12,731 nt of DNA from Oopsacas minuta (taxonomy: Eukaryota > Animalia > Porifera), in NCBI GenBank assembly GCA_024704765.1, contig JAKMXF010000151.1, forward strand, positions 1 to 12,731, in the 5' to 3' direction. The first letter of the stretch is position 1. Each line of letters opens with the position of its first letter. Below the pieces are notes generated by a model, which ran no database searches, had not been told where the DNA came from, and was given only the letters and a program-made list of their open reading frames with translations. Positions 254 through 11,532 of this stretch are shown piece by piece. The position numbers and the translations under genes were made by a program.

Positions 254-601
254 TAGTATTCTTTCCGCCCTATCCCATTTTACACTATTTCTAGTCCATT
301 AGTACAAAATAGCAGATAATTCTACATCTAATTTGAATTGAAAAGAACGAAAGAATCAATGCGGATCAAATGCGAAAAATCCGAAAATATGAATAAATGA
401 AAACACGAGAAAACAGCCTCAAATTAATTCTAATAAAATTCACAAACCATCAAGTAGAAAAATTGACAACTAATATGAAACAAAAGCTCTTATCTCCTGT
501 AAATTAGACATAACAAGTACCATTGACACCAATCGACAATTTGTTTTTGGATAGGTGATACTTTACCACACATGATAAATTTCCCTCAGGGAAGAATACT
601 A
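254..601. repeat. Possible small non-autonomous element (MITE-like) bounded by 13-bp imperfect inverted repeats
   Basis: TAGTATTCTTTCC (254-266) matches the reverse complement of GGGAAGAATACTA (589-601) at 12/13. A similar copy of the right end (AATTTTCCCCTCAGTGAAGAATA) lies at 221-243. No coding content seen. Confidence 0.25.
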
Positions 602-1684
602 TAGGGTGTCTCAAAAGTTTTTCCTCTTCTGAATCCCACTATAATTTAGAATTTCTTAGTTAGATTCATCCAATTATTTGACCATAGATTCACCATTAAG
701 TTTTACGCATATAATTATTCGACCTGGCATCCCATCAAATTAAATTCTTAGGTCTCGAGGGGCTAATCCTATTCCATGTTTTGCAAATATTTTCCAGCTG
801 TGTTAAATTTGTAGCGAGCTTTCTCTTGCCTAGTTCTGCACTGCTTGCAAAATAGATGATGGAATTTACATCTGGAGAGTTACTAGGCCAAACACCTTTC
901 TCCCAAAAGCCAGCTAGATGCTCTAAAAGCCATTTCTGGGTCCTTATGGCTGTATGGGCAGGGGCACCATCCTGCATGAAAATTGTGTCGGACTTCTTTC
1001 GACAGATTTTCCTTTGGGTAAGTGGGGGCTAGCTATCTACGGTTAAAGGTAGTGAGACAACAGTTCTCCAAGTTTTCATTAATATAGTATTCACCATTCA
1101 CTGAGCGTTTTGGGGGGGATGAAGTGTAGTTCTGATAGCCCTGACCGGCTCATCATTCCCCAGACCATCATTTTCGGGAGGTTTTTGACTGATTCAACTT
1201 AGGTAATGTTGTGCGTATTAATGTCCCAAACATGATCCTTCTTCCTATTAGTCGGATGGAAAAGCTCAAAAGGGCTTTCATCACTAAAAGGAACTCTTTC
1301 CCAATCATGACAATCCCATGTTTTGCGTTCCTGACAGAATTCTAGCCTCTTTAGCTTCTGTTTTTCGGTCAATTTCGGGTATTATGGTCTTATAGAGATT
1401 TCACTCCGATTGTGTCGTGGAAAATTGTAAATGAGGGTGAATTGTGTCATTACTAACGCACACCAACCTAGACAAGATATATTCCGCAAGTTTTCAGATT
1501 GAATTGTAGCGTTTCCCGATTGATTTTCTTATTATAACTTTCGGGACCCCGGAAAGTTTCGTTGGACATCCAGACCGGGGCTTGGCATCGAGCAAATATT
1601 CAGCTTTATGCCTTCTACATCAGTTTCGAACTGTCCGAATTGTGACTCTACGAATATTTGTGACTGTTTTCTATATCCCATCTA
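602..1684 (-). mobile_element. IS630-Tc1-mariner element remnant, DD37E (TRT/ITmD37E)-like; 5' end missing or interrupted by the maT element
   Basis: TA (600-601) precedes the TIR-like TAGGGTGTCTCAAAAGTT at 602. A decayed transposase runs on the minus strand up to the maT insertion at 1686. No partner TIR was found to the right of 3002. Confidence 0.85.
674..1684 (-). pseudogene. Degenerate DD37E-type transposase (several stops and frameshifts)
   Basis: Manual translation across frames: ..AKPRSGCPTKLSGVPKVIIEKSIGKR.. (HTH), PKLTEKQKLKRLEFCQERKTW, FSDESPFELFHP (D1 at 1280-1282), PKMMVWGMMSRSGLSELHFIPP, FMQDGAPAHTA (D2 at 969-971), FWEKGVWPSNSPDVNSI, NLIDGMPGRIIICVKLNG..VK* (TAA at 674-676). 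37 residues separate D2 from the expected E position, but the ENLW segment holding that E appears deleted. Confidence 0.85.
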
Positions 1685-1685
1685 A

Positions 1686-3002
1686 CAGGGTGCCTCAAAA
1701 GTTCTGCAACAGAATTTACATGTAATTCTTGTGCATTTAAAGCATATAACCAGACAATATTTGGTTAAGAAAATGCTATTATGTTTAACTATCATATACG
1801 AAAATATTTTGGCTCTACTTGTTTTCAAATCTATTCTCTCGGCCTTCAGACAATCTTTAAGTCTGGACAGAAATAAATTGCAGCCTCGAGCGACCTCATC
1901 CTGATCTAACTCACACCAAGCTTTCTTTAACGCTCGTTTTAGTGCTGGAATGCTGTTGTGGGATCTATTGTTTGCTAGTGTCTCTAGTCTTCCCCACAAA
2001 TAATAATCACAAGGGTTTAGGCCAGGACTTGAAGGCGGCCATTGGTCACGGTTAAAAAACCCTGGGATCTTACTTGACAACCAATCTTGAGATATTTTAG
2101 CGATTGAGCTAGTGTACCATCCTGTTGAAATAGCCATGCATTGTTTTCATGAAGGTCAAACCTATTGCTAAGACATGTTTCTCCAGTATAAGATCTTCGT
2201 ATACCTGAGCATTACCTTTGTAGTTTCGGGTATGAATACTAATGGAGTTTTCCCAAAAAACTGAAATTCCCGCCCAAACCATAATACATCTGGGGTGTTG
2301 TGATTTTTGAACACTTCCTAAGTTTTCTGGGATGTCATTACGTGTTAAGGAATAAACCCGCGAATATTGAGAGTTCCACTTCTCCCCAACACAGAAGATC
2401 TTCTCGTTCGAAAATACATTTGAATCACTGTTGACATTTTTGAGTCGATCCAGCAGTCTACGACATCTTTGGATTCTCTTTTAATTACCTGCCCATTAAG
2501 AGATCTACTCTACTTCGTTTGAAATATTTCATACCTAAGTCTTTCTGATTATTCGTCGAGCAGATTTCTTATCTATTCCCACCTTTGAGGCGACTTTCGG
2601 TGGGACATCGTGGGCCGACGAGTTAAAATCTGAGGAACCTTTTTCTTGTTAGCAGGAGTCCTAATTGTTCTTGCCCGACCTGATCGTTGCTTATCTACGA
2701 AATCGCCTGTCTCAATATATCGTTTTATCTTGCGGGATATCAACGATGGTGAAACTTTCGGTGAACCAAGGGCTTCGAGAATTTGATTCTGCTTCTTACC
2801 ATTTAAAATAAATGAATAATAGGAGACCTCTTCGGTTGTAGTTCAGATATACCAGGCATAACAATAGACTAGAATTGAACTATCACAACATATTGAATAT
2901 CTTATATAGCCTTGTTCATTGTATGAAGTTTACAGCAGTTGAATTATGGTTGATGTAAAAAATTGGTGTAAAAATTAGTTAGAGAACTTTTGAGGCACCC
3001 TG
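1686..3002 (-). mobile_element. Full-length (1317 bp) DD37D maT-family (Bmmar1-like) transposon, inactivated
   Basis: Perfect 20-bp TIRs: CAGGGTGCCTCAAAAGTTCT (1686-1705) and AGAACTTTTGAGGCACCCTG (2983-3002). TA follows at 3003-3004; the left flank reads TAA (1683-1685). Length is typical of mariner/maT elements. Confidence 0.93.
1815..2859 (-). pseudogene. Degenerate DD37D (maT) transposase
   Basis: ATG at 2859: MPGISELQPKRSPIIHLFLNG..RYIETGDFVDKQRSGRARTIRTP.., VFSNEKIF (D1 replaced by N, 2406-2408), MVWAGIS, WLFQQDG (D2 at 2119-2121), WPPSSPGLNPCDYYLWG (D3 at 2006-2008). D2-D3 spacing is 110 nt, i.e. 37 codons minus a 1-nt deletion. The likely original stop TAG is at 1815-1817. A late frameshift makes the listed ORF 1682..2137 read through the TIR. 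Confidence 0.9.
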
Positions 3003-4503
3003 TACACATCCTCAATCCCGAAGACAACAAGCCATATCTATATGGTCCGGGTTTAAAGTGCTAAGATGTACCAAATGTGACTGATCCCCCATCAGCGATG
3101 TAAAGAATTGTACAGGTGTGCTGAGGTTAGTTCTTTCATCTTTTTTAGTTGTTTAACTTGATGCCTTCCCTAAATTCTGCACATCGATCCACAAACTCAT
3201 TCATTTTTTATATTTTTGGCCCATGATTGGCTTGTCTGTATATAAATTTCGTCCTATCGATTGGTTAATTACTCGATAATCTCCATGTTGTACCCCGTGC
3301 TGACTGAAGGTTATCACATCCGTTGATTGCGTTTTTATTGTTTGCGAAAAATCAAACGTGTAGAGGTGTCTTGAGACAAGACTAGCATAACTAATGATTC
3401 CTATCCTCGACGAAACACCACTAGTTGATATTATACATCTAAATAATTCTACCATATTCTATTTCCGAAATTATCTCAAACAAGGTTTTCTAAACAAAAA
3501 CTAAATTCTTTACACTAGTAATGTTTGATTTAGCTCTTTGAACCTTTACAGAGTGATTCTTATATTGTTTTCTAATTTCTGGACTATAATTAGGATGATC
3601 GAATTAATATTTATCATTTTACAATGGATTTTTTATGTCAAACCCCGTGATACTGGTTCTTTGCTATAGGCGTAATCAATTGTTCATAACTTTTTATTCA
3701 GCTGTTAACCAATTCTCACTGTAGTATAGAAATAAAAGTTTTTGATTTTTCTTTACTTAGTATTCGTTCTTTATCCAATTCACCTTTATTTCATCAATAT
3801 TACGTTGTTACTTATCATTCCTTTTTTGTTCTTCAGATTTTTGTTGATATGATGTCATCGCTGGGTGTGGCTGTCGTTTCGATCTGGTCTCGTGCATCCA
3901 TTTATTTGGAAATTTTTATTACTGATACCAAATAAGCCATCCTGATATATATAGTAACAGACATGGCCAAATGTTACCAAACGTTTTTGTTATCATGATC
4001 ATAATCCTTAATTTTCATAATAGTTATTAAAATATCCTAGTCTAGTACATTTTAATAACTCATATATTCATGTAGATTATCATGTCTATTATTATTTATT
4101 TATTTAGCTAACTTACCACAGCTACTTTTAATACAGACAATCATCGCTATTTTTATTTCAACTTATCTTTCAATAATTCAACTGGCATTGTCCTCTTCTA
4201 ACTGAAATGTGTAGCACTTACTTATACTAGATTAAGCCTCATCATGATAATTTACTTCAACAAGTAGTGTGAACTTAACTAAATCCATTCTAATGACAGT
4301 ATAATTTTATTGTATACTTATTGCGAATACGCATTCGCTGAGTTATACACAGAGTACCTGGAGCTCACACGCAATACCCTTTTTGATAATATCATAGCCA
4401 CAGAAACTTCCATAAAATCGTATTAATCCGTGTTCCAATCAATTTGGTATTTTTGGTTCTTGAATTATTGACTACTAAACTGTATTTTCTTCATGTTTTA
4501 TAG

Positions 4504-6477
4504 TATTTTACAAATTTTTCCGATATCATTACGGCTTCTATCCCTCTTCAAGATCATTCAGGGTATGCTATACTAGTTGTGAATTCTTACACTCACAAAT
4601 CTAGTAAGTATCCTACAATTCATGGATCTACTTATGATGAGAAACTCCTCAAGAATTGTTTAATTGAAATTGGTTTTCATGTTGTTTCTCTTTTAGATGC
4701 TAAATCTAGTGATTTCGAAAAAATAATTCAGAATCTGGAACATTTTTCTAATTCCTCACGGTATACATGTATATTTTTTATTTTTAGCGGATATCAAGCA
4801 GATGGTCGATTAATTTTTGAAGATGAAATCGGCATTGATTACCAACATATCTTTGACATTTTGGTCGACCCCTTGAAGGTTTTTGGAAAAATTCCAAAGA
4901 TCATAATCGTAAATACATATAGACCATCTCGTTTTGGGGTTAAATCATTTTTTGGAGTCAAATCGCAAGATATACCTTTTTGTAAATCTCCCTACTGTCT
5001 CACAATGCAGATCGTCCATGCCCTGGGTGCCGCGGAAAAACGTGGACCTTTGATACAGGATACATTTGTTTCAAAATTTATTTCTGAACTTCGCCTATCT
5101 AATTCTCCTATATCAGAGGATATAAAATCTATACATGACTTTAGCACAATTCTTAGGCACGTCTATCATTCAATCTCTAGTGAATCAAAGCTTTTTAAAC
5201 TAAACTTGCTTGTTAAGATCGATGATCAATTATTTAATTCAATTTCCTTCCCACATTGTCGAGCAATTCGAGATGATTTAGTTTCTTCGCCACCCCAAAC
5301 TCCTCTGAATAACTTCCAATCTACAAATAATATTGTGAACGATCTTAGAAATGTTAGTTGGTTCCATGGTGGACTAACGAGAGATCAATCTGAAGAACTG
5401 TTGGAATATGAAGGTGACTTCCTCGTTCGCCAGAGCTTTTCTGGTAACAATTATGGTCGATTTATACTCTCAGTTTTTTATCGCAATTTACTTTATCACA
5501 TTCCACTTGTTCTCTCTCCTTCGGGTATCTGTATTCTGTACGAACCTGTTTTTCAGTCTTTAAACGATTTTGTGCTATATTATTTAGATAATGGACGTCA
5601 TATTCCTACTCATGAAACCTTTGTTCAACTTAAACGTCCTATTAAATATCAAGCTAGGCCAAATATTGAAGCTATGACCTCTCCTAGCAGTATTGACCAA
5701 AGTTGGATGCATGGCAGAATTCCACAAGAACATGTTCAGATATATCTCAAAGATGAAGGTGACTTTCTCGTATGGCAAAGAGATTATGAATATATTCTAA
5801 GCTATGTATACAATGGTGAGATCCAATCGATATTTGCTAGTAAAAGTAACGAAGAATATTTTACTACTGACCTGATTGCTGGAAATTTTGATGACATTAC
5901 TGATCTTGTCCAGCATCTGATTTTACATCATTCATATTATCGAGGTGTGTATTTAAAGACTCCAATTGGAAAACATATCCAACATACGCATTCTTTACGT
6001 AGTGATGTTCGTGATATTACGGCCTCTCCTCAAGTACTAAACATATCACCTTCTATGGATTCAACAACTGATCCTTTTTGGTTTAGAAGGAGTGAAACTC
6101 ATGACAAATTGATTGACTTGTCAATTTCCCTTACAGAACAAAGATGGTTTTCTAAATCGATCACTTATGACCTTTCAAACGCTGTATTAAAGAAAGAAGG
6201 AGATTTTCTAGTACGTACAAGCCAATCAAGACCAGGACATTTGTCACTCTCTGTAAGGGTTGGAGAAGATATCCAAACATTTGGTGTATTTATTTCAGGC
6301 AAACCTTGTAGGTATTCTCTAGATCCTCATTCAAAAACCACTTTTGGCAATGTGGTTGAACTAATTAACCATTATCTGCAGACTAAGCAACCATTACCTG
6401 GATCTTTATACCCAAGTGCTTTTTTACTCAACCCAATAAATGTTCAATCAGCTTTGAACTCCCTCAAATATTGTTAA
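4504..6477 (+). CDS. Pseudo-caspase (Peptidase C14/caspase-fold) plus 3x SH2 domain protein; 5' end incomplete (probable upstream exon)
   Basis: The frame is open from 4504 (after TAG 4501-4503) to TAA 6475-6477. The track start at 4579 is a GTG, and caspase beta-1 strand GYAILVVNS begins before it at 4561. Caspase motifs: HGSTYDEKLLKNCLIEIGFHV, CIFFIFSGYQ, KIPKIIIVNTYR, p10-like TFVSKFISEL..LFNSISF. Three SH2 repeats begin WFHGGLTR..GDFLVRQS, WMHGRIPQ..GDFLVWQ and WFSKSITY..GDFLVRTS. Confidence 0.9.
   Translation, partial: YFTNFSDIITASIPLQDHSGYAILVVNSYTHKSSKYPTIHGSTYDEKLLKNCLIEIGFHVVSLLDAKSSDFEKIIQNLEHFSNSSRYTCIFFIFSGYQADGRLIFEDEIGIDYQHIFDILVDPLKVFGKIPKIIIVNTYRPSRFGVKSFFGVKSQDIPFCKSPYCLTMQIVHALGAAEKRGPLIQDTFVSKFISELRLSNSPISEDIKSIHDFSTILRHVYHSISSESKLFKLNLLVKIDDQLFNSISFPHCRAIRDDLVSSPPQTPLNNFQSTNNIVNDLRNVSWFHGGLTRDQSEELLEYEGDFLVRQSFSGNNYGRFILSVFYRNLLYHIPLVLSPSGICILYEPVFQSLNDFVLYYLDNGRHIPTHETFVQLKRPIKYQARPNIEAMTSPSSIDQSWMHGRIPQEHVQIYLKDEGDFLVWQRDYEYILSYVYNGEIQSIFASKSNEEYFTTDLIAGNFDDITDLVQHLILHHSYYRGVYLKTPIGKHIQHTHSLRSDVRDITASPQVLNISPSMDSTTDPFWFRRSETHDKLIDLSISLTEQRWFSKSITYDLSNAVLKKEGDFLVRTSQSRPGHLSLSVRVGEDIQTFGVFISGKPCRYSLDPHSKTTFGNVVELINHYLQTKQPLPGSLYPSAFLLNPINVQSALNSLKYC
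4561..5250 (+). other. Caspase-fold domain (p20- and p10-like halves) with catalytic His and Cys positions both Tyr
   Basis: FIFSGYQ aligns to the F-x-F-S-G-H-G motif of meta/paracaspase-type C14 domains (Tyr codon 4792-4794). KIIIVNTYR aligns to PKxFxx(D/Q)ACR (Tyr codon 4918-4920). Alignment by eye. Confidence 0.8.
5359..5643 (+). other. SH2 domain 1 (SHC-like, canonical pTyr pocket)
   Basis: WFHGGLTRDQSEELL..GDFLVRQS..GRFILS..FQSLNDFVLYYLDNGRHI..VQLKRPI. Both alphaA2 Arg and betaB5 Arg are present. The C-terminal part resembles the SHC SH2 end (YHMDNHLPI..LCLQQPV). Confidence 0.92.
5704..5967 (+). other. SH2 domain 2 (degenerate, FLVW)
   Basis: WMHGRIPQEHVQIYLKDEGDFLVWQRDYEYILS..FDDITDLVQHL..YLKTPI. 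betaB5 Arg is Trp (TGG at 5773-5775) and the alphaA2 position is Gln. Confidence 0.85.
6145..6438 (+). other. SH2 domain 3
   Basis: WFSKSITYDLSNAVLKKEGDFLVRTSQSRPGHLSLSVR..FGNVVELINHYLQTKQPL..LLNPI. The FLVR Arg is retained; the alphaA2 position is Tyr. Confidence 0.9.
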
Positions 6478-8051
6478 TTCATATTGTACTTGTTTTTCCA
6501 CTTTTTCCTAGAATTCATCACACGCACATACAATCAATCTATCATTATTGCTTGCGTTCTTCGTTTGCTAGCTCGCTGCTTGATAGCACTATGCATCGAT
6601 TGGGGTTGGTATACAACAGCTAAATTCCTCGTAATGCTTTTGCCGTCAGCCTGCTCAATCTACTCGACATGAGTTAAGAAAATAGGGAAAAATTTAGAAA
6701 ATTCTATCCATGTCCAATCTGAAAGAATTATTATTGCCTTCTGTCTTCCCACTTGAAGTAACTACGCAAGTTTTTCATATGAATCTCGGTGCTACGTCCC
6801 TCGATTGATATCAAATTGTTTATATATCGAAATTTGTTAAATTTTCAATTTTGAAGGATGATTTTTAATACTCCTTTGTGAAAATTCATTTGTCAAAGTT
6901 ATGGCTTTATTATATTTGGCATATAGAGCTGTGCCTGTGATAAAAACTTCAATTTTTTTCTTCGCTGAGCAGAGGTTATATACGATGGGCTTTTTCAAAA
7001 ATCCAGAAAGGTTAACATTATCTCATAATTTAGTCATAAGTATGAATTTTGTTTAAAATTAGAACTAGTCCGAATCGGACACAAATACCCTTGTATGCCA
7101 AAATCATCTTTGGGTCTTCCAGTTTCTTCAATCAATTCCGAACATGCAAATACCTATGTTGTTAATATACAATGAATCTGTTTCTACTATATACGTACAT
7201 ATGTATGTAGACATTAACCGTGCAATAGTCATTCAACACCACTAAATAAGCAATTTCGTGTTTTCTAGACCCTATGGTCATTATTTGCGAATGCTTACTT
7301 AATTCTAAGTGAAACAACTATTTAACCATGTTTGTATACATGGTTTGGACTAAATTTATGAAAGTTTTATCAATTATGTATTTTCTACCAAAGATTATCC
7401 TCAGTAATTCGATAATGACTATTTATTCAATGTTATTATGACATGATCAATTCTGATGGCATATTTCTACTGATCCGAGAACCTCAAATGATTTCATATT
7501 GTATCCCTTTGTTTCAAATATTCCACTAATGTGTCACTTCTGCTACACCTGGCAAAAATTATGATACAATGAAAACTCTACATTAATTGCTTTTGACAAG
7601 TCAAAATTTTCATAATTAGTTTAATTATCACTAATATTATAAGTTGTACTTGGTTACCAATTATGAGTAAGGAATCTACTCAGCATGTACTTAGTACAAT
7701 AATTATATTTTCTTTGGAATAGCACTTCGTTTCACATCGTCTCATTATAGTGATCTTTTCCAATAAAGTATATACGTATCTACAAATCACAGTAGTGATA
7801 AATTGATAATTATAAAATATGTATATTCACTTATCAATTATTATCTAAGGTACTTACCAAAAAGTACTATTCTGTTCTACAAATAGTTTACTTAATTGTT
7901 GAATATTTATGTATTACTATATGGTTTAGAATTCCCTTTAATTTATCCAAAGAACTTAGTTGATATTAAATTAGTATCCTTTAGAAGAAGTGATCGACCG
8001 AAGATGAATTTTGCCGAATAACCTGTATTCTGCAGAATAATATCAAATTAT

Positions 8052-9048
8052 TACTTAGGGCATTCAAAATGTTCCCATCTTTGTTTAATATCTTGTCACT
8101 ATAACAACTTACTAATCAATTTTCTACATAAAGTGTTCAAAATACTCTCCCTCTACATCTATTCATAGTTGTAGCCTTTCAACCCACTTAGAAAATGTTT
8201 TTTATACTCGTCTCTGTCTAAGGAATTGAGGTAGTGGTAAATTTCGTTTCCTAGCTAAGGTCAGGTATGAAATAGCCGTCCTTCGAGATGTTTTTCAGCT
8301 CATGAAATAGTCCGAAATCACAAGGCGATGGATCTAAGGAATGCGGAGGGTGTTCCATCGTTTCAAACCCGATATCCTCACTGACTTTTCTTTCGTATTT
8401 TGAAACATGAGTCCTGGAATTATCGTGGAGAATTTAATTCCTCGAATTCCTGTACGCGGACGTCGTGTTTTTAGACTTTCTCGACTTCTCTCAGGGTATT
8501 TTTCTCCATGAAATTCTCCATTGACTTGTTCTCCATTAGGCACAGGTATTTGAGCCACTGGCCCATATGGATCAAAAAATATGTTGTAGAGAACCTTATC
8601 GTCCAATAGTTCAACAATTTCAGAGGCAATTTCAGGGATTTTAGCGGGAAATGGACTTCCGGTCCCAGGGACATGTTCAATACTGCCCCCTACCAGCCTT
8701 GAATTTACATGCTCATTCCTTCAGAGTGGGATACGCTAGAGCTTCCCCATGATAAACGATGACGAGATCCTTATTTATCTGGAGTGGTCTATCGCCGAGT
8801 ACGACACGAATCTTTATGTACGCTCGTTGTTCTGTTTGCTGATGTGTTTTGAAGCCATAAAAAGTTAACTCTCGAAAATAGGTAAAATTGAGAGAAGGAT
8901 AGATCAAGATATGTGATAGCTAGAGTGAATTGCTCAACAGCATTGAATAGGTTATCGATAGGACTATAGGATATACTATGCTTTTCATTTAATCCAGCAG
9001 AGTATGGTTGCTCTAAACTAAATATGGGAACTTTTTAATCCCCAAGTA
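8052..9048 (-). mobile_element. Internally deleted DD34D mariner (about 1.0 kb) inserted in the hAT 3' region
   Basis: Degenerate TIRs: TACTTAGGGCATTCAAAATGTTCCCATCTTTG (8052 onward) versus reverse complement TACTTGGGGATTAAAAAGTTCCCATATTTAG (ending 9048). TA follows at 9049-9050. Confidence 0.88.
8124..8858 (-). pseudogene. Degenerate mariner transposase with a large internal deletion
   Basis: TEQRAYIKIRVVLGDRPLQINKDLVIVYHGEALAYPTLKE* (HTH1), then ..EIVELLDD joined to KVLYNIFFD at about 8597/8598. Further motifs: RRPRTGIRGIK, LHDNS (D at 8422-8424), HPPHSLDPSPCDFGLF (D at 8317-8319; exactly 34 codons between), KWVERLQL*IDVEGEYFEHFM*. The WVPHEL linker and first catalytic D are absent. Confidence 0.9.
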
Positions 9049-9119
9049 TAATTGATTAATAAACTGTTATGTTTAATTAATCTGATTAACCTAAACAACA
9101 CAATCGATCATTGCAGAAT

Positions 9120-10725
9120 TTATAGTAGATAATTGAAATTGATAGTGCTCACTTTTTCTCTGCAGAATACTGCAGAAAACTGGTTTCTAGTAATAGCCTG
9201 TTCTTTTAGGTGTAAAGATTTCTCCAGCAGTTGAAAATATATTTCAACCTCAGTTAAAGTCGGTGTCGGTGTCAGATATCTAACTGTTCAGGAACGTAGT
9301 TTATCCTGATTCTTGTTACGCTGAATGTATGAGCTTCAAATTTTATGCAGCTCTCTGTAACTGGTGCATTTAAAAATCTGTTTTCTCTATACCCCCAGGA
9401 CACTTTTCCATCGCTCATTTTCGAGAATGTTACATCCCCATTATTCCTAGATCATTGGATGTCATATCAAGTGACCTCATGATGGTAGTTACAAAAGGGA
9501 TGGTTGAACTTATACAAGCTTCTTTGAATGACTAATGCTTTGTTGCTTGTTCAAATGAGCTTTAATAACTGTAAAACTTTTTCACAAAGCAACCAATCGT
9601 TATTATTAATATTAACATCAAGATGGGGAATTCTAATAATGTGAAAGTAAATCAGATCTTTTCTACTCAGAACTTTACTTCAAGGAAGAGAAGCAAATGG
9701 ATAGTTTCAGCCGAGTTGGGTTATTCCAGGACGTAGAAACAAGATGGAATAGCAAGTATTATATGTTGGAATAAATAAAATTTCTCAAACAAGCAATTGC
9801 TGCCACATCTGCAGAGTTTCCTACATAACTGGACCAAAGGTTCCACCGATTTCAAAGATAACAATTCATCCTTAATAACTAGTTGAAGTGTATGATTAAA
9901 ACAAAGAACTGATGATAAAGAACAAGTTGATATATTAAACGCAGCTTTCATGTTTGCAGCATTATCATGTAAACAAACACAAACATTTACTATAATATTT
10001 CTGTTAAGAAAGACTGATTCAAGACTTAAATAAATATTTCAGCAGTATGGTGTACATCAAAAGGGGCACATGCAAGAGTGAATACCTTTCGAGACCTTTT
10101 GAATATATAATGAATCACAATTCCCATATATCCATGATGGTAAGCTGACCAACAATCGAGGGAAATTGTGACTTGAGTGGGATTTTTCACTACCCAAAAT
10201 TTGCTTCTATTGCTTGAGTATTTTGGTATATGTGGGGTTTAGCATGTCCCTATAGTATTTCTCTGAGGCTAATTCAAACTGTCAACCATTCGTGCGTGAT
10301 GGGGAATGATTCCTGGATTGTTTATAGTTGACCATGGTAGAAGATCTAGAACAAGCATCTCGAATATTGATTCGTGGCCCTTTTTGAGCTTTCTCACTAT
10401 TAAAATCCCAAACTGAGTTGTTTTCTACCCTTCCTGGAATAGTAGTGCTTATTTATTCGGATATTTTTGGCTGTAATGTCGAAAAGTTGAAACAATAGCA
10501 GAAGATCTTTTATTTGAGTGGTAAGAATACAAAAGGTTTTGATTAATTTGATTGAATTCTTCCCATGATTTGTTTTCAAATGTAACTTCATTGAATATGT
10601 GTTTATTTTCTAGCAAGAGTAGATCCACAAGCAATTCGTTTATTACATAAATTGCAAATGGCATACTTTGAGTCAATCTCGCAAACGGATAATATTTTCC
10701 AGACAGGGGAACGATATCTATTCAT
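9120..10725 (-). pseudogene. Degenerate hAT transposase with BED zinc finger (ZBED4-like organisation)
   Basis: ATG at 10725: MNRYRSPVWK..YAICNLCNKRI..LHLKTNHG (BED finger), DLLPWSTINNPG, SLDCWS (D at 10155-10157), HTAE, HDNAANMKAAF, CFNHTLQLVIKD (CxxH, about 9870-9903), DWLLCEKVLQLLK.FEQATK, RYLTP.PT.TEVE.IFSTAGEIFTPKR (E at about 9243-9245), LFCRE..NFNY. Many stops and frameshifts, and a probable deletion before the dimerisation domain. Confidence 0.92.
9635..9812 (+). other. Inverted internal segment of the hAT transposase
   Basis: The plus strand reads SDLFYSELYFKEEKQMDSFSRVGLFQDVETRWNSKYYMLE*IKFLKQAIAATSA (TRWNS at 9739-9753), while the flanking transposase parts lie on the minus strand. 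Confidence 0.85.
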
Positions 10726-10753
10726 GATGAAATATTTAAAAGGAGAATTTATA

Positions 10754-11532
10754 CAAGGGGGTTCAAAATAGAATGTACCCGAACATATTTTAGACTGCCC
10801 AGCCTCAATATCTTGTATAACCAATAGTCATTTTTAGATATGTTAGATACATCCCTTGTTGAAAAGAGAAATAACAAATGGACCCTCGAGATGAGAACCT
10901 TCTGTACTGTATAGTATCTGGAGTGTCACTGCTTCTAGACAGAAACAAATGAATTCCAGACAAAATTTGGGACCAATAAAGCCCCGTAAAATCTTTGATA
11001 TTCTTGTGCGTGTGGAAGTTGAGGACTGAAGAGAAGCTCAGCAACCTCAGACCAAAGACCCCTGTACATGGGGTCTACTCAGGAAGGAAGAAACTGTGTG
11101 ACACGGCCGTTAAAGAGCAGATCCGAAATTATGTTATCGCATCTCCCAGCCGATCGATCAGAAAGAGGAGTCAAGCACTCGTTATTCCACGAGCATCGCT
11201 AATGAGGGTTATGAAGGAAGACATCCACTTACTCCGAACACATGAGCAGCTGAAAACGAATATTGTGCTAGAAATCGCAGTAAAAGCAAAGATTTTCTGA
11301 AGTCAGTTTTCCAGAATTTCGCGTTGCGACTCAAAAATGTCCAAGAATGTAATGGCGTCCATATCGAGCACCTCCTCTAAACCCGAAAGTTTTCAAGCTA
11401 GAGACCTGGTATTCATGGGATAAATATCGAATTATGTTACTATCATATATTAATAATTTCATTGCTTTAACAAAAATATTGCTTGAACAGTTGGGGAAAG
11501 AATTTGGTTGCAGTCTATTTTGGACCACCCGG
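10754..11532 (+). mobile_element. Internally deleted Tc1/mariner-superfamily element (rosa/DD41D-like by flanking motifs) inserted in the hAT 5' region
   Basis: TA at 10752-10753 and at 11533-11534. TACAAGGGGGTTCAAAATAGAATGTACCCGAA versus reverse complement TACCGGGTGGTCCAAAATAGACTGCAACCAAA matches 24/32 including the TA. Element length is 779 bp. Confidence 0.85.
10879..11380 (+). pseudogene. Transposase remnant lacking the whole catalytic domain
   Basis: WTLEMRTFCTV*YLE..FQTKFGTNKAP, YSGRKK, ASPSRSIRKRSQALVIPRASLMRVMKEDIHL joined at about 11230-11235 to RTHEQLKTNI..FLKSVFQNFALRLKNVQECNGVHIEHLL* (TAA at 11378-11380). The subfamily cannot be confirmed by DDD spacing because that region is deleted. 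Confidence 0.8.

Follow-up and report, generated by a model that had tools for sequence, protein, structure and literature searches.

To our knowledge, all animal pathways characterised so far use death-fold domains to recruit caspases, and cFLIP, the only well-studied full-length pseudo-caspase we know of, is recruited by the same death-fold rule. cFLIP-L is a regulator of caspase-8 composed of two death-effector domains (DEDs) and a pseudo-caspase domain, and in cFLIP, too, a Tyr takes the position of the catalytic Cys. Here we describe a reading frame of the glass sponge Oopsacas minuta (Hexactinellida) that joins a caspase-like domain without the catalytic dyad to three SH2 domains. It lies on contig JAKMXF010000151.1, whose entire 12.7 kb (12,731 nucleotides, nt) were analysed and are called the window below.

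Like cFLIP-L (CFLAR), the sponge protein would combine a full p20 and p10 fold lacking catalytic residues with recruitment domains in the same chain. Unlike cFLIP-L, which carries its death-effector domains at the N terminus, it has three SH2 domains at the C terminus. The two proteins are about 12% identical in sequence, and the inter-subunit linker of the sponge protein (amino acids (aa) 141-164, counted from position 4504 as are all residues here) has no Asp conserved among the aligned orthologues. A Pfam search with E values of up to 1 gave no DED or CARD match in the sponge protein. The animal caspases (MEROPS C14A, such as caspase-3, -6, -7 and -8 and CED-3) share with it the fold, the topology and the match to PF00656, and in the colinear alignment the sponge SGY stands against SHG and the sponge NTY against QAC. 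They differ in that the sponge protein has Tyr for both His and Cys and, as aligned, lacks the R-x-G Arg, a residue lining the S1 pocket. A third group of known proteins, the tandem-SH2 proteins such as SHP-2/SHP-1 (PTPN11/PTPN6), Syk/ZAP-70, PLC-gamma and p85, resembles it in carrying closely spaced SH2 domains, a presumed multivalent reader of phosphotyrosine, on an enzyme-type domain, and the SH2 domains of SHP-2 are the most similar to the third sponge SH2 domain (SH2-3). In contrast to these proteins, the sponge protein has no phosphatase or kinase domain, its apparently dead enzyme-type domain is N-terminal, and its middle SH2 domain lacks the betaB5 Arg.

With moderate confidence, we read the locus as a real single-exon glass-sponge gene, most likely started at the ACG at 4531, whose product of about 648 aa would be a non-catalytic adaptor recruited by phosphotyrosine.

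A caspase-like domain and three SH2 domains in one frame

On the forward strand, positions 4504-6474 hold 657 sense codons in one frame, closed by the stop codon TAA at 6475-6477. The runner-up open reading frame (ORF) in the window, on either strand, has 151 aa, and the G+C content of the window is 29-40%. The proposed coding sequence is a single exon at 4531-6477 (+) of 648 codons plus TAA, and the orthologues read from the same site are 644-662 aa long. When the whole frame was searched against Pfam, three SH2 domains (E = 8e-30) and Peptidase_C14 (E = 8.6e-8) were matched; the pieces were also scanned singly against the Pfam gathering cut-offs (21.4 bits for C14 and 21 bits for SH2). A chance ORF was rejected as the reading of 4504-6477, and two separate genes were rejected because one frame is open in ten loci. 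A scan for AATAAA returned a count not above chance.

The pseudo-caspase domain, with its p20-like and p10-like halves, was placed at 4561-5238 (+; aa 20-245) from PF00656, AlphaFold2 and Foldseek. Scanned alone, it matched PF00656 with 35.4 bits. This match was limited to profile positions 2-128 of 233, which is the p20 half, so the remainder of the domain was tested by structure. The AlphaFold2 model of aa 1-249, made from a 27-sequence alignment, reached a predicted local distance difference test score (pLDDT) of 85.5 and a predicted template modelling score of 0.86. Its elements run b1-a1-b2-a2-b3-a3-b4 and then b5-a4-a5-b6, six strands and five helices arranged as in caspases. Foldseek returned caspases throughout among the best 50 matches in the PDB (caspase-3, -6, -7 and -8, CED-3 and Sf-caspase-1; E from 2e-10 to 1e-8, about 232-262 aligned columns and template modelling scores of 0.6-0.8). 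The best 30 matches in AlphaFold-SwissProt, covering residues 17-249, were caspases and cFLIP throughout, and mouse CFLAR (cFLIP) ranked third (E = 1.8e-9), beside caspase-8.

A profile of the N-terminal domain, built from seven family members and searched against 1.84 billion representative proteins, recovered its own family first and then true C14 proteins at E values of 1e-8 to 1e-3. Against PDB sequences the family profile matched weakly (E of 0.008-0.15), and all 60 of the 60 listed matches were caspases and colinear. A search with alignment A3 returned unnamed caspase-like proteins only. The ESM Atlas gave no cluster joining C14 with SH2 and yielded caspase clusters only (score 0.82), which we treat as a lead and not as evidence. 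Judged by the model, the N-terminal region holds the full caspase fold, p20 and p10.

The catalytic positions are occupied by other residues. Tyr97 (4792-4794, +) takes the place of the catalytic His, with FSGYQ versus FSGHG in the closest active relatives, and Tyr139 (4918-4920, +) takes that of the catalytic Cys, with VNTYRP versus IDACRG or QACRG. Both tyrosines are invariant in the family, and the dyad loss is invariant in the alignment of eight orthologues. When HMMER was used against caspase-3, the first dyad site slipped by one residue to Gly96, leaving no His either way. By its sequence, the domain is catalytically dead and hence not a peptidase, and an active protease was rejected since the His-Cys dyad is gone. 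In the alignment, the S1-pocket Arg of the R-x-G motif after beta1 is missing too (T-I-H-G-S), and a possible counterpart of the other S1-pocket Arg, that of the SWR motif, is Arg180 of GAAEKRG.

Conservation within the domain is uneven. The loop equivalent to caspase L3, GAAEKRG (5026-5046, +), is a wall of the one-time substrate groove, and its segment (aa 175-186, GAAEKRG...D) is 67% invariant, the highest value among the segments. Next come beta1 at 57%, beta4, where the catalytic Cys would have been, at 56%, beta6 at 50% and loop L1 at 47%; the variable segments include helix alpha2 (0%) and L4 (8%). Selection thus appears to keep the old substrate groove and the strand equivalent to the caspase dimer-interface strand (beta6).

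The nearest active relatives (P0012 and P0016-P0036) are single-domain caspase-like proteins of about 240-300 aa with FSGHG and IDACRG. In most of them L-x-G-T replaces the R-x-G-T of classical caspases, and their S1 pocket may therefore not be Asp-specific.

Three SH2 domains follow the caspase-like domain. SH2-1 (5353-5643, +; aa 284-380; Pfam SH2 48.2 bits) is of the canonical type: neither its alphaA2 Arg293 nor its FLVR Arg309 varies in the family. It has a dN/dS (ratio of non-synonymous to synonymous substitution rates) of 0.10-0.24, and its best PDB sequence match is the SH2 domain of Shc (E = 9e-11). SH2-2 (5701-5964, +; aa 400-487; 27.3 bits) is degenerate: it reads FLVW, the invariant Trp424 (5773-5775) replacing the FLVR Arg, and the alphaA2 Arg is also gone. 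Although degenerate, it exceeds the other two SH2 domains in conservation (36% invariant). A fast-evolving linker, predicted to be disordered, comes next (5965-6123, +; aa 488-540; pLDDT below 50, dN/dS 0.6-1.1 and 6% invariant). The canonical SH2-3 (6124-6438, +; aa 541-645; 42.3 bits) carries FLVRTSQSRPG with the invariant Arg571 and is SHP-2-like; its PDB sequence matches are the SH2 domains of SHP-2 and Fer (E from 1e-10 to 4e-8). The protein is likely to contain two phosphotyrosine readers, SH2-1 and SH2-3, and one SH2 domain, SH2-2, with another conserved role.

An earlier note, made from the letters of this DNA, had described one uninterrupted frame joining a caspase fold to three C-terminal SH2 domains, and Pfam, AlphaFold2 and Foldseek confirm this architecture. 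It had called the first domain a pseudo-caspase, which is borne out by Tyr at both catalytic positions in all orthologues, and had suggested domain searches and structure prediction, by which the N-terminal region models as a whole caspase fold. Its general statement that SH2 domains read phosphotyrosine would apply to SH2-1 and SH2-3, which retain the FLVR Arg; it would not apply to SH2-2, which has FLVW and no binding Arg.

Orthologues, paralogues and the proposed role

Full-length relatives with 42-54% identity were found as uninterrupted ORFs on long contigs in seven other ENA assemblies, with one three-SH2 gene per sample besides near-identical second contigs. The relatedness of these assemblies to O. 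minuta rests only on the gene order around a two-SH2 paralogue, described below. Using pairs with unsaturated synonymous divergence (dS of 0.28-0.72), we obtained dN/dS values of 0.12-0.21 for the caspase-like domain and 0.13-0.29 for the SH2 domains, against 0.74-1.02 for the long linker. At the level of sequence, this contrast between domains and linkers is what a functioning protein of several domains would show. Within the reach of the searches, the distribution is lineage-restricted.

The earlier note had proposed looking for the same architecture elsewhere and comparing dN/dS among orthologues. Intact single-ORF orthologues exist in the seven other assemblies, and the domain values (0.12-0.29) lie well below ~1. 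Its suggestion that an intact ORF speaks for function is strengthened by the purifying selection in the domains, with the qualification that the ORF is intact only given a non-AUG start. It had also known of no characterised protein joining a caspase to three SH2 domains; no such description was found in full-text literature searches, and what has to be added is a two-SH2 paralogue family in the same genome.

Two of the related loci deserve separate mention. On L006, from one ENA assembly, two gene copies of 668 aa each (counted from the start chosen by the gene caller) lie head-to-head at 462-2468 (-) and 4345-6351 (+), about 1.9 kb apart, as an inverted duplication. On L014, a Logan contig of SRR2064712 from a more distant relative, the family match ends after ...LTSP at the canonical donor CCAG/GTAACC (808-815), and this species appears to carry an intron at the p20/p10 boundary.

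The N-terminal domain profile also recovered P0011, a protein of 547 aa in which two SH2 domains follow a dead caspase domain that is more degenerate still (IGYS and DTFD). It belongs to a two-SH2 pseudo-caspase family of glass sponges (profile E = 5e-8) that further includes P0043 of O. minuta and P0044-P0047. P0043 has 551 aa and is encoded at 8001-9656 of locus L013 (JAKMXF010000266.1). NCBI names it 'Tyrosine-protein phosphatase non-receptor type 11' (PTPN11). Pfam found no phosphatase family match in P0043 or in the window protein; the PTPN11 name is wrong and stems from SH2 similarity only. P0043 and P0011 share the gene order LRR, COMM, Ssl1, two-SH2 gene and adaptin, which ties the ENA sample of P0011 to a relative of O. 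minuta. Like the three-SH2 protein, the paralogues place a dead caspase-like N-terminal domain before SH2 domains, in the same genomes. They differ in having two SH2 domains, an ATG start and an N-terminal domain below the Pfam C14 cut-off. They also sit in a conserved neighbourhood and evolve more slowly, O. minuta being 60-77% identical to the others, against 43-54% for the three-SH2 protein.

The order along the chain is a dead caspase fold, SH2-1, SH2-2, a disordered linker and SH2-3, with the four folded domains constrained and the linkers drifting. We propose that SH2-1 and SH2-3 would anchor the protein at one or two sites of tyrosine phosphorylation, and that SH2-2, with its FLVW, would have a conserved role other than phosphotyrosine binding. 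The pseudo-caspase domain would act as a protein-binding module, which may hold a peptide or a binding partner where the active site once was, pair with another caspase-fold domain, or do both. Such holding or pairing is suggested by the peaks of conservation in L1, the former dyad positions, the L3 GAAEKRG and the beta6-equivalent strand.

The best-surviving alternative, put forward in the earlier note and in our view possible but unlikely, is that the protein works like cFLIP, its dead caspase domain heterodimerising with an active sponge caspase and its SH2 domains, in place of DED or CARD, bringing the complex to tyrosine-phosphorylated receptors. The third rank of cFLIP in AlphaFold-SwissProt and the 50% invariance of the beta6-equivalent strand agree with this, as does the fact that the nearest active relatives are single-domain caspase-like proteins with FSGHG and IDACRG. 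However, these relatives share just about 20% identity with the domain, and no partner was identified. Moreover, the former substrate groove is conserved at least as strongly as beta6, which heterodimerisation alone does not explain. Caspase regulation after the fashion of cFLIP, or a link to immune proteolysis as in the earlier note, would be an attractive but speculative sub-case of the adaptor reading. A broader idea, which we regard as doubtful, is that glass sponges recruit caspase folds independently of death folds, two conserved families of pseudo-caspase-SH2 adaptors directly linking tyrosine-kinase signalling to control over active caspases, with the three-SH2 protein as their ACG-started member.

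The start codon and the public gene model

In the frame opened after the TAG at 4501-4503, no in-frame ATG stands ahead of codon 168. That first ATG, M168 (5005-5007, +), is the start of the deposited model LOD99_11314. We propose as initiation codon the ACG at 4531-4533 (+), in the context ATT ACG GCT TCT with A at -3 and G at +4. The homologous codon reads ACG-GCT-TCN with A at -3 in six lineages including the window (the others being L005, L006/7/8, L004/L012, L009 and L010), and ATG-GCT in three (L001/L011, L002 and L014). The start site has a Kozak-like context in every lineage, with ACG or ATG alike, and the two codons have switched at least twice on the family tree; the ACA ATG GCT of L014 is one base from the ACA ACG GCT of L004, L009 and L010. 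On L009, an in-frame TGA lies three codons 5' of the ACG with no AG between, indicating that no upstream exon can feed the frame there, and on L004 an in-frame TAG lies four codons 5' of the ACG. Between L004 and L009, both without an ATG before codon 168, the N-terminal half has a dN/dS of 0.12 and so must be translated there. Compared across these lineages, the ACG at 4531 is most likely a conserved non-AUG start, which is the simplest reading; the start may instead come from C-to-U editing or, in some species, from a 5' exon. An out-of-frame ATG at 4493 opens an upstream ORF of 27 codons (4493-4576), which overlaps the ACG and ends with TAG early in the caspase-like domain. This upstream ORF could influence the choice of the start site.

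The deposited LOD99_11314 (432 aa), a hypothetical protein of O. minuta in NCBI and the best protein match of the frame, joins 5005-5413 to 5588-6477 and leaves out both the p20 half and the SH2-1 core. Its 174-nt GT..AG 'intron' (5414-5587, +) cuts out the FLVR core of SH2-1. As 5414-5587 is conserved and constrained coding sequence, the model, with its M168 start and this intron, is very probably an annotation artefact of the missing ATG. We consider it improbable that the product is nonetheless limited to what the deposited model encodes, a p10-like remnant with SH2 domains started at the ATG at 5005, the upstream 167 codons being untranslated. No in-frame ATG precedes M168, where the NCBI model starts, in the window, and the same is true of L004, L012 and L009 (the first Met in MQIVH); the first Met of L010 comes slightly earlier. 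Yet the upstream 150 codons are open in ten loci under strong purifying selection (the 0.12 between L004 and L009), the parts on either side of M168 together form a single caspase domain in the AlphaFold2 model, and the p10 half alone would be without four of the six core strands.

Several observations weigh against a functional, ACG-started gene in O. minuta. Non-AUG initiation is argued from sequence comparison alone, the O. minuta copy is just 54% identical to its closest orthologue, and it lies between transposon remains on a contig of small size. Run searches found no RNA run holding the gene; the runs that contain it, X1-X4, behave like genomic DNA, giving one colinear contig over 3314-6792 with flat depth. 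A second haplotype (X2/X3) keeps the ORF open with 10 single-nucleotide polymorphisms and no indel. Four of these are synonymous and six non-synonymous, a weak skew (polymorphism ratio pN/pS of about 0.4) with numbers too few to decide, and one change, G318C, alters an otherwise invariant residue. Run X5 holds about 31% of the sampled words of the ORF and gives a single contig of 548 nt that differs at 21 positions and is free of gaps, which fits a relative about 96% identical.

These points would suit a recent pseudogene, the O. minuta copy having lost its start (ATG to ACG) and being stranded among transposon remains while its orthologues stay functional: the ORF lacks an ATG start, the flanks of the short contig are repeat-rich, pN/pS includes a change at an invariant Gly, and no RNA run was found to contain the gene. 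We nevertheless judge this quite improbable, since the identical ACG occurs in five other lineages with intact, constrained ORFs, an open frame of 657 codons, at a G+C content of about 35%, cannot last long without selection, and the two haplotypes and the X5 relative show no indel in the part covered.

Directly 5' of the ORF, a pyrimidine-rich tract ending in AG (TTTTCTTCATGTTTTATAG) occupies 4485-4503 (+), its last three bases being the in-frame TAG that bounds the ORF. By its sequence, this tract may be an acceptor for cis- or trans-splicing, or plain 5' untranslated region. Another glass sponge, Aphrocallistes vastus, is reported to use spliced-leader trans-splicing (PMC10282587). Position 4503 may thus end a spliced-leader acceptor AG, and even then a start inside the exon would still be needed. 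That the AUG comes from a spliced leader or from a coding exon farther 5', joined at this AG, with the ACG at 4531 encoding Thr, is very improbable: the tract and its AG, the trans-splicing in glass sponges and the D-x-I that precedes T-A-S in the window, L005 and L006 speak for it, but the stop codon on L009, with no AG after it, leaves no room for such an exon there, L004 also has its stop codon close to the ACG, three lineages have ATG exactly at the ACG codon, and at least 1 kb 5' of 4504 is colinear with genomic contigs and holds no obvious exon (on DNA, not RNA, evidence).

Surroundings of the gene and what it may mean

The gene lies among repeats. An element of about 1.3 kb at 1685-3003 has 33-nt inverted repeats at its ends (85% complementary) and reaches 25 times single-copy read depth at most. 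The reverse strand of this element carries ORF fragments that show Tc1/mariner-like motifs by eye, without Pfam confirmation. It is probably a decayed multi-copy DNA transposon. Downstream of the gene, read depth at 7113-7300 rises about 30-fold or more in all four runs, with loose contig ends at 7111-7115; position ~7113 is the edge of a very high-copy repeat. Among the flanking ORFs, Pfam recognised a weak BED zinc finger only (10606-10824, -). The statement of the earlier note that all neighbours are decayed agrees with probable transposon remains, as seen in the inverted repeats and the multi-copy depth, and Pfam supports it, weakly, for the BED finger only.

Remains or genes of hAT/ZBED5-type transposases (BED finger, DUF4371 and FAM200-ZBED5 RNase-like) recur within a few kb of the three-SH2 gene: at 10606-10824 (-) of the window, 10629-11324 of L001, 12534-13968 of L004, 6267-6962 of L011 and 1-1428 of L012. 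This proximity may be a coincidence in transposon-rich regions or a shared neighbourhood.

Full-text literature searches found no paper or named family with a caspase-SH2 architecture. As far as these searches reach, the architecture is what is new here, both domain types and pseudo-caspase adaptors being already known. The public gene model, which omits the SH2-1 core along with the p20 half, is very probably wrong. An ACG start, as it appears here, would account for the truncation of this gene by gene callers, and other glass-sponge genes may be affected likewise. A conserved dead caspase joined to phosphotyrosine readers would mean that the caspase fold was newly combined with tyrosine-kinase signalling among early-branching animals, and it would offer a natural test of the role of the caspase fold after catalysis is lost. 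If the doubtful idea of a recruitment independent of death folds is true, SH2 domains would take the part in glass sponges that DED and CARD play in other animals, and the three-SH2 gene would be a rare case of sole reliance on non-AUG initiation.

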